DNA from: Pocillopora damicornis
Taxonomy: Eukaryota
Length of the DNA: 64,000 bases
Assembly: GCF_003704095.1 (NCBI RefSeq)
Contig: NW_020845410.1
Span: 682,001 to 746,000 of the forward strand
Direction: 5' to 3'
Shown: positions 14,037 to 19,074 of the stretch, piece by piece
Position numbering within the stretch: the first letter of the stretch is position 1
Layout: each line of letters begins with the position of its first letter
Translations under genes and position numbers: made by a program
The notes under the pieces: generated by a model
What the model was told of the DNA's origin: nothing
What the model saw: the letters and a program-made list of their open reading frames with translations, nothing else
Databases searched by the model: none

Positions 14037-17000
14037 TTAGTAATTCTTGCCCGAGTACTGTCGTACACTGAAAGGAAAAAAACAAAAACAATGCAGTTGT
14101 TAGCTATCATAGATGGTAAAACCAAATTTGTCCAGGCATAAAAGATAAAAAGATTGTCACTTTTGGGCACTACTTGGCCAATTTCTAGAATGAACCTTTA
14201 ATTTATCATTTGACTGTCTTCAACCTGACTCACCTTTGTTGAAGAAGAAACTGAGCAAAATTAATCTGGGATTGGTTGCCCCCAATGGTGATTATCCTGT
14301 CATTTGAACCCGGAAGAGGATCATCGATCTTTATGTTTGCACCACTGCGATTTCTGCAAACATACAAGTCAATGGTAATGCAAAATACCAACATTCACAC
14401 ATTGCAGCACTCTTTATTATACTAAAAATCATTTTCGGAATTAACATTGAGTGTATCCATCTCATATTCTTACCTTATTTGTCTTATCCTCTCTCCTCCT
14501 CTTCCAATAATAGACCCCGCCAACTGTAAAGCACAATTTATTTGACATTTGTTTAATGCAATTCTACCATTAGATTTGAGAAGTTACAATTTATATGATG
14601 CATTTGGATACATAAAAAAAACTGGTTTAAAATTGGTAAGAAAGTAAAATTTCCATTTTGATATTGAAGACCTTGATAAATGTTACTTACATCTTTAGGA
14701 ATGGTAACTTGTGTCTGAGTTTGTTCTCCTCCTGCTGAAGGTCCTCCTTGATTCCACTGACCTTCAACACAAAATGCAGAGAAACAGTTTAGTCACTAAC
14801 ACAATGCTTGATTTTCTATGAAGGATCATTTCTTAAAAGGGTTGATGGTTCAAGCCTTACAAAATGACCACAATTCTCCATAATTTATATGCTTTGAGCT
14901 TTAAGGAAAGTGTTAATCACTTAACAATTTAAAAAATTTCCATAAAACTCTTTCACACCCTTACATTTAAGGAGTGATTGTTGCAAGAGGCAGCTTACTA
15001 AAAAAGAAAGTATAAATTCAATATTATGTAAAATGTATTTGCCACCAACATTACACAGAGAAGAAGTATACCATGCCCAAAATAGGAATCATTTTTCTAG
15101 TTTTTTTGCTTAGTATGGATGATTAAGGTACTATGAAGAAGACATGATTTTTACCTCCCATATCACCTCCCATGTTTCCACCACCCTAATATGTTAAAAG
15201 AAAAAGTGACAAATTACAAATGTTAGATCAATCTGCCTTTACAGCTGCTCTCAAGAAGAAAAGGTTAAATCTCCAGCAAATACTTTTAAATTGCTGGACG
15301 AAACTGCAGACAAATCAATTACATCTGAAACTTACAAAATCTTGTGAGTAGTTTCCTCCATATCCCATATTATCACCACCACCAAAACCACCTCTTCCCC
15401 CACGGCCTCCACGAGATCCTCCCCTTCCTCCATCTCGACCACCCCGTCCTCTTCCTCCTCCACGTCCTCGGCCACCTCCACCAGGTCCATAACCACCACC
15501 ATAATCCCAGTCATTCATGCCAGCTGGGTCGTACAAGGACACTGACCCCTTCAAGGGAGACTAAAGAAATACAAAGTATACTTTATCAATAACTAAAAAA
15601 AAAAACCCTACAAGGGTTAGCCAGAAAAGCTTGTTTATTGCCTCATTGAGGATTAAATATTGATAAAACTTCCTCCTTCACTTACTTCGTTTAATTGATC
15701 AATAACTTCTTTAACACAGTTCACAATAACCTCATCAGAACCTGTGGGACAAATCTCACATTTAGGATGCTATGTCAAGTACAGAGGTGAAAGAGTTACA
15801 ACTGAGGTTGAAGAAACACATAAATGATTAAAAAAAAACTCACCACGAATGGACACAATTCTTTCTGTTGATCCTGGTAAACAATCAGAATGAACCTGAA
15901 AGTAATAGAGAGGTATTCTTTGAAAGGATGGTCACAAAATCATAAAAATTAATTCAAGACACCAAACAATTTCCTGCCCTGTCACCAGTTGACAGACTAA
16001 TATAATTAAGTTCCCATATAAAGTGCTTCATGTCAAAACCACTCACCTTGATTTGTGCTCCAGTTTTCTGCCACAAAATAAAAATAATTATTAGCAAAGA
16101 ACTTCTCTTAAAGTATAGTTTTTTGGTAAAACTAAAATTGGCCAGAAAACATCACCAGCAAATTTACCTCCCGAGTTTCCTTTATTTTCTGTCCTTTTTG
16201 CCCAATCACACTCCCAACCTGACTTCGTTGTACTAGCATCTGGATTTCTTTCCCATTAGAACTGGATTGGCGCTATAACAAGATCACACAAAACAATTTA
16301 ATCCTGTCATCAGTTTATCTGACCAGCCACTATCAAAGAGAATCAAGCAAAAGGTAGAAACAGATAACCAGAGGAGTATCCCAGCCAGTCTTTGAAACTT
16401 CATAAATGACTATTTTTTATCAATTCCAGCCTTCGGTTAAAACCCTTCATAAACCACAAAAGTACATCATTCATGGTTTAAAAATGACACATGTCAGTCA
16501 AAGCAAATGCAAATGATTTCAGGAACATATATAGCAACAGAACCAAACTTTGTTGCCAACAAGATGTGATCTCTTTTGACCAGAACATATCAAATTGATT
16601 AAAAACTCACCCCACCGATCTTTGGTAAGCATTCTGAAAATATGGCCATTGCATCATCATAAGCAGCAGTAATGGTTAACACACTATGAGTAAAAATAGT
16701 TGGGAAATGAGAACGAACACAGCCCTACATGCCTTAATAATTTAGAGAAAGCAGGTTGGGTAGAGATCATATAAACATAAGCAAATATTTGTTTTAAGAA
16801 TTTTTCTCACTTCAAAGTTACCATAAAGTGATTGTTAACACTTTTTTATGATGGTTCTCCTTATTTCTGATAAAAACGTGTCTATGGTAGTAAAGGCTTC
16901 CTAACATTCCAGAACATTAGAAATATAGCAACAAGCACCACAGAAAACATTAAGTTTCAAGACAACATAGGGTATCATACAGCATGAGTTTACACCTACT

Positions 17001-19074
17001 GTATAACATTCAACAAATTCAATACTGGCCACTGGTTGCCAAAAAGTCTGGCAGTTCAGTTAAAGTAAAAGTTTGAGGCATAACTTCTATCTATAGTTAG
17101 AATCAATCCCTCTAGATATGACAGCATTACACTGTTATGACATGCAGTGTAATGTACAGGAAGGCAGGACACACATTAACGTGACGCATGGGACATACCG
17201 CTCGGGGGTATTGGTATCCGGGACATTGACCACTGCTTTGAACTTGGGTGAGATCACAACAGGGACCAACACGGGCGGGTGTCAGGCAGGTAGATGGATG
17301 GGAACGGGTGGATAGGGCCGGGATGGGAACACGGAGGGAATAATAGGAGAGAAAAACAACAACAACTTAGCAGGGATAAACTACTATTCCAGAGGCAGAA
17401 CAGAGCATCTGACAAATATGAAGGTACTTGGTTAGCTGGATAAACTACAAGGGAAAGGAAGGAGTTAAACAGAATGCAGTTCAAAGCCTAAGCCTGGGAA
17501 AATCACAAGTCATTAAACATTCTAAAGTGGAACAGAGGCTATCTTGTGAGGTAACATCCCTTTAACAAAATGTACAATTTAATGTGGATGAAATACTTCA
17601 TGTGGAAGTCACCATAGTATTTGCTAAACATGCATGCATGTATAAACTTGATATGTTTCTTAGTTATACACCAGAAAAACCAGAATCTGTCATAATGAGA
17701 TTAGAAAAATTTTCAATAGCAACATCACACCAGTAATAATGAACCTGACGAAGCAGAAAAAGGAATCATTTGGAAACCATTCATACATAATTACTGTTTA
17801 CTGACACAAATTGGACCAGTAATCAAACATTGATCACTTTACAATTTGACTTGACACAAAACTGTTTAAGGTGTAGAATAAAGATAAAATAACATTGCTC
17901 CATACCTCACTACGTAATCTTTTCACATTCTGTCCCCCCTGAAAAATAAAAAAAATTTTTATCAAAAGGTGCAATACTCATCAACAGTTACATAAAATTT
18001 ATTAATCTTAAGCTTTACAATACTACTACAAACACAGTGAAAATTATCTGTCTTCTGCTTGTTTCTAAACTTTAAAACTACCTTTCATTTCATATCCCAT
18101 CAACTTTATTAAATGCTTCACAAAGCCATTGTCAGCATGTGTAAAAACAATGTTACCAACCATGAGATACAATAGCAGAGCTTTCATCGGAGTAAATAAA
18201 ATTAACAGGACTTTCTACCATCACATAGGTATTACCTTGCCAATGATACCACCAGCATCCTAAAACATTTAAGGAAAGAAAAAAAAAGTATCTAAATTTA
18301 GAAATAATGTATCTCTTTCTTTAATCAAAATCTCTTTACAAATGAGGCTGGTTAATTCAGCTCAAAATTTTAATTTGAGGCCACAACAATCTTTTGCAAT
18401 TTGTGCAAAGATTTTTTAAAGCAACCTTTTCAATTTAATGTCACAAAGTTGCTGGCTTTTCTATCATTATTTCTTTTACTTTTAACATTTTTGGAAAAAA
18501 AATTACACTAAACCTACATATGGCATAGGAAAGTCTAGTTAACAGTAAACTATGGTTCAACTATTTTAACTTTTTTTCTTTGCCTTGTATTTATTATCAT
18601 AACTGAAAACAAGTGAAGATTACAATGAAACTAATGGCTGCCAAACAGAACCACACTGACCACTTTATCAAACTATAATCCTTTTCGAAGTCTTACCCTG
18701 CTCTCAAGTAGAAAGCGTAGAGTTGTCTGTTCTCCACTGACTCCACCCTCTTCATCTTTCACCCTCTTTGCATGAACATTACTATTGTAATCCTCTTCAG
18801 CTGGTCTCTTCATTCCCATTCCTTTATCATTTTGAGATAAAAATTAAGTTTCTTTTAAAAGAATAAGAAGCTAACTCCAAAAAAGTTTTATTAGGAAGCC
18901 ACAGTTTGAAAAAGATGTTCTTAAAATTGTTTTTGTAATACAACTAAATGTGACTGGAACTTGAATCCTCAAATGTTCAACCTCATGCATTTAGGCCAAA
19001 ATGCTATTAAGAACCTTATCTAAAACTTGGAAAAAGTATATATAATCACCTTGATCAACTGCAGGTTGGTCCAT
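14037..19074 (-). CDS. HNRNPK: Heterogeneous nuclear ribonucleoprotein K (three KH domains, RGG-rich KI region)
   Basis: 16 coding exons, all GT-AG and frame-consistent: 19050-19074, 18697-18821 (KRPAEED bipartite NLS), 18236-18259, 17906-17938, 17199-17242, 16611-16683, 16168-16272, 16047-16067, 15844-15895, 15686-15741, 15336-15560, 15155-15185, 14691-14761, 14474-14523, 14234-14353, 14037-14067 ([10 protein letters not shown]). A non-coding first exon ends at 20552. Confidence 0.96.

Follow-up and report, generated by a model that had tools for sequence, protein, structure and literature searches.

A conserved C-patch block around the 44-nt KH1 exon of a coral hnRNP K gene, a candidate site of unproductive splicing control

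We analysed a 64,000-nucleotide (nt) stretch of the genome of the coral Pocillopora damicornis (NCBI RefSeq assembly GCF_003704095.1, contig NW_020845410.1, positions 682,001 to 746,000; below, the window), the minus strand of which carries a gene for the RNA-binding protein hnRNP K. The evidence supports the view that the fifth exon of this gene, 44 nt long and set amid C-patches, is a conserved weak point in the splicing of hnRNP K and critical for the reading frame. New here are a 403-nt conserved block around the exon and the persistence, in a much more distant hexacoral, of both the C-run density and the AG-free zone that precede it. The conserved stretch with the C-runs is often left unspliced, and it is therefore probably a dial that limits the amount of hnRNP K. 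That the exon belongs to a control module of unproductive splicing run by KH proteins that bind poly(C), among which hnRNP K is the likely repressor, is a reading in which we place about even confidence.

The gene and its 44-nt exon

The gene comprises 16 exons and 15 introns, all with GT..AG ends and all joined in each of the four RNA runs used (X2, X12, X13, and X16, from four studies; the runs containing the stretch carry the label coral or marine metagenome, or else coded names). Three of the four libraries were PolyA or Oligo-dT libraries, and the assembled contigs break at exon borders. The 15 joints seen, among 16, were all constitutive, and the main spliced form contained the 44-nt exon in all four runs. 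The exon and its neighbours lie as follows.

17906..17938, minus strand: exon 4 (33 nt, 11 residues; donor at 17906), placed by RNA joints
17243..17905, minus strand: intron 4 (663 nt), retained in RNA contigs
17199..17242, minus strand: exon 5 (44 nt), where the second half of KH1 begins, placed by RNA joints, length, and frame
16684..17198, minus strand: intron 5 (515 nt), retained in RNA contigs
16611..16683, minus strand: exon 6 (73 nt), placed by RNA joints

The joints from 17906 to 17242 and from 17199 to 16683 had GT..AG ends in all four runs, and both they and the length of the exon were as described in an initial annotation made from the sequence alone. The exon begins on a codon boundary and encodes 14 residues plus two bases of an Arg codon. 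It holds two C-runs of its own (17222-17220 and 17208-17204). Skipping it shifts the reading frame, as had also been predicted, and exon 6 read from its first base then meets a stop after eight codons. If intron 4 is kept, a stop follows 23 codons past exon 4; if intron 5 is kept, it follows 20 codons past the 44-nt exon. The unproductive outcomes (intron 4 retained, intron 5 retained, exon skipped) thus all meet an early stop.

The acceptor of the exon had been called weak on account of its CCCAAG end. The CCCAAG is present, and the last 20 nt of intron 4 are the richest in C (0.40) and tied for the poorest in U (0.35) among the 15 introns. They are not poor in pyrimidines, which make up 0.75 of these positions, and AAG acceptors occur in three of the 15 introns of the gene, so that only part of the description holds.

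By its encoded sequence, the gene is an hnRNP K orthologue and nearer to hnRNP K than to PCBP. Protein searches were made with the exon pieces taken singly rather than as a joined model. The KH_1 family matched three exon pieces, above cut-off on the KH2 and KH3 pieces, and an RGG-rich exon at 15560-15336 provides the Gly/Arg-rich linker. The 39-residue KH3 exon scored 44 bits against the solved KH3 of hnRNP K, 30 bits against PCBP2, and 27 bits against PCBP1. Searched against a library of 1.84 billion proteins, the same exon retrieved full-length proteins named hnRNP K by their sources in Exaiptasia, Nematostella, Oculina, Porites, Hydra, and many bilaterians. These named orthologues align to the gene of the window over its whole length.

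Conservation around the exon

A degenerate pattern built on nine residues of the exon peptide, run over metagenome contigs of JGI and ENA, picked out eight loci. One of them (L008) was a chance match and was left out of every count; the other seven are unspliced coral-type hnRNP K loci. L002 has too little upstream DNA and was left out of the counts of AG-free zones and C-runs. Six of the loci form three near-identical pairs (L004/L007, L003/L006, and L002/L009), and these six are nearest to the Oculina protein by summed tblastn identity, a measure made noisy by the Gly/Arg-rich exon. L005 is far more distant, with seven differences in the 44-nt exon and sea-anemone-like peptides, from which we infer a placement near sea anemones.

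When the gene was compared with these loci by blastn, the match over the 44-nt exon extended from 17501 (17489 in L009) to 17099. The resulting 403-nt block is 82-84% identical in all five loci that cover the region (L003, L004, L006, L007, and L009) and reaches 259 nt into intron 4 and 100 nt into intron 5. All other exon matches were 73-94% identical and overhung their exons by at most 28 nt. In these alignments, the block around the 44-nt exon is the only conserved intronic sequence in the gene. The initial annotation had proposed an alignment of this intron across species, and the one made here bears out its expectation of conservation. The parts of the block outside the exon, with the evidence for each, are listed below.

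17383..17501, minus strand: upstream part of the block, with the upstream acceptor of the initial annotation, a GCTAAC motif, and the first GTAGTTTATCC copy (82-84% identity to L003, L004, L006, L007, and L009)
17366..17382, minus strand: AG followed by TTTATCCCTGCTAAG, a candidate alternative acceptor with the branch-point-like CTGCTAAG (sequence, Porites models)
17341..17365, minus strand: U-rich tract just after the last upstream AG (sequence; kept with a 4-nt length change in L003, L004, and L009)
17246..17340, minus strand: C-patch array, ten C3 runs in about 95 nt (C-run counts, conservation)
17243..17245, minus strand: AAG acceptor after CCC (CCCAAG invariant in five of five aligned sequences)
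17187..17198, minus strand: donor GTATGTCCCATG with a C-patch at +7 to +9 (invariant in five of five aligned sequences)
17099..17186, minus strand: downstream part of the block (blastn to the loci)

Four motifs were invariant in the five aligned sequences: CTCCCATCCC, GTGYTGGTCCCTG, the CCCAAG before the exon, and the GTATGTCCCATG after it. Aligned to L005, the last 150 nt of intron 4 outscored every one of 300 dinucleotide shuffles (z 2.6); the z values of three control stretches from introns, likewise compared with L005, were 0.6, 0.3, and -1.2.

The alignment gaps in the block measured 1, 4, 5, and about 20 columns. From the upstream AG at 17382-17381 to the exon there are 138 nt with a stop in the window and 143 nt (out of frame) in four loci; in L009 and in Porites the frame stays open, over 147 and 159 nt, respectively. 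The gap sizes and the extension lengths of 138, 143, and 147 nt show that the block is not coding. A hidden coding extension, that is, an insert-bearing isoform, was considered and rejected because of the stop in the window and the out-of-frame length in the four loci.

A hairpin of 10 bp with a 10-nt loop was predicted at 17154-17125, about 45 nt past the donor. It is kept in five of five aligned sequences; two of its pairs have one-sided changes that still pair, and there is no compensatory change.

The C-run array and the AG-free zone

The last 120 nt of intron 4 contain ten C-runs of three or more, whereas the other 14 introns contain zero to two each, in keeping with the claim that about ten CCC patches are peculiar to this intron. 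Sliding a 120-nt interval along the two strands of the 64 kb gave 11 C-runs here and at most six elsewhere. Within the array, GTTCCCATCC occurs twice, 25 nt apart (repeat family D2). The C-rich stretch is single-copy, matching only itself in an assembly of 234,350,878 bases and 4393 contigs. We regard the array as the likely platform for poly(C)-binding KH proteins.

Between 17365 and 17245 there is no AG. This zone measures 121 nt, close to the 120 nt given earlier, and the corresponding zones measure 18-54 nt in introns with exactly placed boundaries. It is among the six longest of the 3918 AG-to-AG gaps on the minus strand, one of the six being a run of N, and its length is partly due to its C/T-rich composition. 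The branch-point-like motif CTGCTAAG lies at 17373-17366, and a TGCTAAC is found nearby in L005. The U-rich tract at 17341-17365 is a candidate polypyrimidine tract for a putative distant branch point.

We compared array and AG-free zone in the genomic DNA of hexacorals. In the seven sequences with enough upstream DNA, the AG-free zone measured 121, 126, 126, 126, 126, 130, and 149 nt, so that the window and the six others all exceed the roughly 100 nt that mark an exon with a distant branch point. The last 120 nt held 10, 9, 9, 9, 9, 9, and 9 C-runs. Eight of the ten C-runs of the window keep their position in L003, L004, and L009, and four of ten do so in L005, which has nine runs of its own. 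Density is thus kept while some runs turn over.

RNA folding was not unusual: the energy of 17480-17180 compared with 100 shuffles gave a z of -0.40, with 30 of the 100 folding as well. No Rfam family was found over 16600-18000 at E-values up to 1.

Retention and skipping in RNA

Unspliced contigs spanned the whole of intron 4 and of intron 5. For intron 4, the contig at 17215-17935 had a depth of 67.6 in X2, 61 in X12, and 30.4 in X16, and its counterpart in X13 (17370-17935) a depth of 59.7. For intron 5, the contig at 16655-17228 had depths of 33.8 (X2), 50.7 (X12), 41.9 (X13), and 28.5 (X16). The unspliced pieces listed for introns 2, 3, 6, and 12 had depths of 3.5-26.3; among the listed pieces, intron 4 was thus deepest and intron 5 second in all four runs. 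The spliced joint between 17242 and 17906 had depths of 1194.6 (X2), 69.3 (X12), 447.7 (X13), and 86.3 (X16). Some carry-over of DNA is possible, yet it would not yield the 2- to 17-fold difference between introns.

In two other animals, open reading frames (ORFs) link retention to spliced neighbouring exons. The Porites Logan ORF P0268 encodes 326 residues on a contig of 3277 nt; it begins inside intron 5 and then reads on, spliced, across every later exon. Two of five oyster Logan ORFs (P0305 and P0306) start three residues ahead of the exon peptide, and hence in the intron upstream of the exon; their contigs measure 2528 and 2326 nt, compared with 1687-1835 nt for the other three.

Skipping was found in a sea anemone. 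The first 35 residues of the Nematostella isoform X3 (P0277) are the +1-frame reading of the 36 residues ending at exon 4 (exon 2-4 sequence), the 15-residue exon peptide is absent, and the remainder is identical; a codon-compatibility script found this to be the sole compatible offset. The isoform thus skips the 44-nt exon. Two further models give weaker evidence for a skip: the Gigantopelta isoform X3, with a Met start directly at the exon 6 peptide, and the Rhopilema model P0288, from which just the 39 residues of the exon 5 and exon 6 peptides are missing, in frame. Butterfly isoforms X2 (P0341 and P0343) have an internal Met start just past the exon 5/6 region. The Rhopilema model and the butterfly isoforms may reflect splicing variation at the same place.

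The human exon

Loss of one copy of hnRNP K causes Au-Kline syndrome. Four variants appear in the available part of Table 1 of PMC9606382: c.213+5G>A, c.214-77G>A, c.257G>A (abnormal splicing), and c.257+5G>A. Read from these names, the human exon runs from c.214 to c.257 and is 44 nt long, which supports the length that the initial annotation had given for it. It starts on a codon boundary and ends at the second base of Arg86 (p.Arg86His, PMC5006848). Human and coral exon are thus equal in length and phase, the human side being taken from variant names only. In the methylation (DNAm) cohort of PMC9606382, as far as its available text goes, all three intronic variants flank the homologous 44-nt exon. 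A conserved control module at this exon, if real, would aid in reading the Au-Kline variants located there.

Proposed mechanism and its rivals

In the proposed mechanism, the branch point would be distant, at the end with CTGCTAAG and the U-tract, so that the C-array would separate it from the acceptor. Poly(C)-binding proteins with several KH domains, loaded on the C-patches either side of the exon, would decide whether the exon is defined, with hnRNP K as the most likely repressor. Excess hnRNP K would divert its own pre-mRNA to intron-retaining or exon-skipped non-coding forms, and the outcome would be negative feedback, possibly countered by PCBP-type activators. PCBP-type proteins bind the same motifs as hnRNP K. 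We infer hnRNP K to be the sensor, a role for which PCBP is an equal candidate. In human cells, according to the available text of PMC13751310, HNRNPK bound upstream of a 3' splice site and in the exon leads to silencing, and PCBP2 can oppose it. We take the conserved module of unproductive splicing itself as real; autoregulation of hnRNP K through it is a plausible hypothesis.

Several points weigh against this mechanism. Contig depth is a weak measure, being a single figure per contig and unsuited to ranking parts of a gene; 118 further pieces exist besides those listed, and no piece among those listed as unspliced comes from the short introns 7-11 and 13-15, which leaves these out of the comparison. 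Neither the skip junction from 17906 to 16683 nor any other skipped or alternative-acceptor joint was among the 15 of 16 joints seen in the four runs of this coral, in contigs that drop or hide rare forms. The acceptor of the 44-nt exon is not clearly weaker than the others of this gene, just four of ten C-runs hold their position in the distant L005, and the motifs of hnRNP K and PCBP are indistinguishable by sequence. Finally, the available sections of PMC7026658 report that knock-down of HNRNPK in K562 cells led to more retention of 130 bound introns; HNRNPK there promotes the splicing of the introns to which it binds, and the loop would then be positive, not negative.

The last of these points also belongs to the strongest alternative, a constitutive helper. 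Here, the C-rich polypyrimidine tract lets PCBP-type proteins, or an activating hnRNP K, splice a tiny exon with a U-poor acceptor; the exon is essential and its surroundings therefore conserved, and the flanking introns are merely slow, with no feedback. In line with this, the exon is in the main form in all four runs, no alternative was found among 15 of 16 joints, and C-rich tracts drive the inclusion of cassette exons through alphaCP/PCBP in the accessible parts of PMC4797308 and PMC5829739; the rise of human intron retention after HNRNPK knock-down (PMC7026658, available sections) fits as well. A helper accounts poorly for conservation that reaches 259 nt upstream and 100 nt downstream, well past a polypyrimidine tract. 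It also leaves aside that skipping or retention recurs at the 44-nt exon in the transcript models of four other animals, and that no comparable block surrounds the gene's further tiny exons, of 21, 24, 31, and 33 nt. We consider this alternative serious though rather unlikely.

Returning to the control module, the initial annotation had described a self-sensing splicing switch. Part of this stands, namely the conserved, frame-critical exon amid C-patches and the unproductive forms found here; its poison acceptor finds no support, the joint being absent among the 15 of 16 joints seen and a different AG being used in two Porites models. We advance only tentatively the wider idea of an ancient self-measuring device that would predate the split of cnidarians and bilaterians. 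In such a device, C-patches lying downstream of a distant branch point and ahead of the acceptor of the 44-nt KH1 exon, plus patches in the exon and after the donor, would register excess protein and leave transcripts detained or decayed, and the same fragile point would lie behind the four Au-Kline variants listed above (c.213+5G>A, c.214-77G>A, c.257G>A, and c.257+5G>A). Unproductive splicing recurs at the 44-nt exon in the coral, Porites, the sea anemone, the jellyfish model, and the oyster, which suggests a very old point of dosage control. If the feedback is real, hnRNP K joins the splicing regulators that limit themselves by unproductive splicing. The roughly 95 nt of C-patches within the 403-nt block offer a concrete, testable element.

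Upstream acceptors and the Porites insert

The initial annotation had named a specific route: hnRNP K on the C-patches blocks CCCAAG, splicing moves to the acceptor at 17446-17445 (or the exon is skipped), and the resulting stop leads to nonsense-mediated decay. The upstream acceptor exists, with a TTTAAC, a pyrimidine tract, and a TAG at 17447-17445 (AG at 17446-17445), and, in the frame of the donor, an exon begun at 17444 runs into a stop at codon 26. The region is also kept in all five nearer coral loci, where the added 208 or 212 nt break the frame. The junction from 17906 to 17444 was not among the 15 of 16 joints seen in the four RNA runs, whose contigs drop rare forms, and in all four the unspliced contig passes straight over 17444. 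In L005, the region of this acceptor could not be aligned, and the Porites models take the AG homologous to 17382-17381 instead. Acceptor, tract, and stop are therefore as described, and their use in the proposed switch is improbable.

The 11-mer GTAGTTTATCC occurs twice on the minus strand, at 17438-17448 and 17374-17384, 64 nt apart (repeat family D1). Downstream of the AG supplied by each copy lie TTTATCC and a GCTAA(C/G) motif, and the two look like a tandem duplication of an acceptor/branch-point unit.

An exon begun at 17380, after the second AG, adds 138 nt in frame and includes a TGA at 17284-17282. Models of Porites evermanni and P. lobata (P0154 and P0265) carry a 53-residue insert directly before the exon peptide, in the middle of KH1, derived from 159 nt of intron 4. 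The first 11 residues of this insert are identical to the translation of 17380-17348 of the window, and its end resembles the last 17 codons there. This start indicates that the Porites models use the AG homologous to 17382-17381 and not that at 17446-17445. Models of P. lutea and P. harrisoni lack the insert. A word search with residues 72-135 yielded 32 candidates and, among proteins of 234-745 residues, placed the insert in its own cluster only. The insert may be regarded as a protein-level echo of the block in the other great coral lineage, and its source is either a genuine longer isoform or a gene-model artefact that arose from an open frame.

Explanations outside splicing control

Five C3 runs at 17327-17300 are separated by loops of 2, 2, 6, and 3 nt, a spacing that could let the coding strand fold into an i-motif and the template into a G-quadruplex, and thereby slow the polymerase ahead of the small exon or act as an intronic enhancer. 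A similar pattern occurs in L003, L004, and L009, and PCBP1 is reported as a binder of i-motif DNA in the available portion of PMC12865031. The pattern is loose in L005, with one loop of 14 nt, and the block hugs the splice signals on both sides, with acceptor and donor among the invariant motifs, which points to RNA. An element acting at the level of DNA is therefore very improbable. An embedded non-coding RNA, or a repeat or mobile element, can practically be set aside as the source of the conservation: the conserved 10-bp hairpin predicted downstream of the exon would fit it, but it has no compensatory change, no Rfam family was found within the limits given above, folding is ordinary (z -0.40), and the stretch is single-copy.

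Relation to known systems

RNA-binding proteins commonly limit themselves by alternative splicing coupled to nonsense-mediated decay (AS-NMD), as in the skipping of PTBP1 exon 11 and the conserved poison exons of SR and hnRNP genes. The system described here resembles such units in having a short frame-shifting exon in the gene of an RNA-binding protein, motifs of that protein's own type alongside, intron sequence conserved like exons, and early stops. The 403-nt block is a flanking intron conserved like coding sequence, and premature stops through an alternative outcome arise from the introns 4 and 5 retained in all four runs; a skip, an outcome seen in Nematostella X3, would bring a further one in this coral. 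Unlike with AS-NMD poison exons, the form seen here is retention of both flanking introns.

There is also a possible resemblance to detained introns, which are specific introns kept in polyadenylated, otherwise spliced transcripts. In poly(A)-selected libraries, two introns were deeper than the others, and ORFs of Porites and oyster pair a retained intron with spliced downstream exons.

A C-rich tract just upstream of a U-poor acceptor is also found at the cassette exons controlled by alphaCP/PCBP (PMC4797308 and PMC5829739, in the parts available). Those tracts activate inclusion in mammalian genes. The array here is roughly 95 nt long, lies in a coral hnRNP K gene, has companion C-patches in the exon and after the donor, and may act in either direction. 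Exons with a distant branch point and AG exclusion, as presented in the available text of PMC1431707, share the AG-free zone (121-149 nt in seven of seven sequences) and a branch-point-like motif with a U-tract at its upstream end. Regulatory-looking inserts between polypyrimidine tract and 3' AG are likewise described in the accessible part of PMC6339879; here they consist of C-runs, not G-tracts.

For hnRNP K itself, the available text of PMC8423707 gives autoregulation as still to be determined as of 2021. Our literature search found no paper settling whether hnRNP K controls its own level, and no such loop at the 44-nt exon is described in the available portions of PMC9532847, PMC10287951, PMC9895063, and the preprint 10.1101/2020.05.20.107375.

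Other observations in the gene

In intron 12, contigs of all four RNA runs departed from the window at 15066/15067 and at 15111 and went on for up to 255 unlike letters; both an insertion/deletion difference between strains and an alternative exon are possible. At 14741, in exon 13, run X2 had three extra letters (TCC, plus strand) at full depth in a Gly-rich coding exon, an in-frame length variant between samples. The P0233 cluster of JGI/ENA transcript ORFs fell into two length classes, 479-480 and 387-391 residues, the longer of which has about 90 extra N-terminal residues that resemble an open 5' leader.

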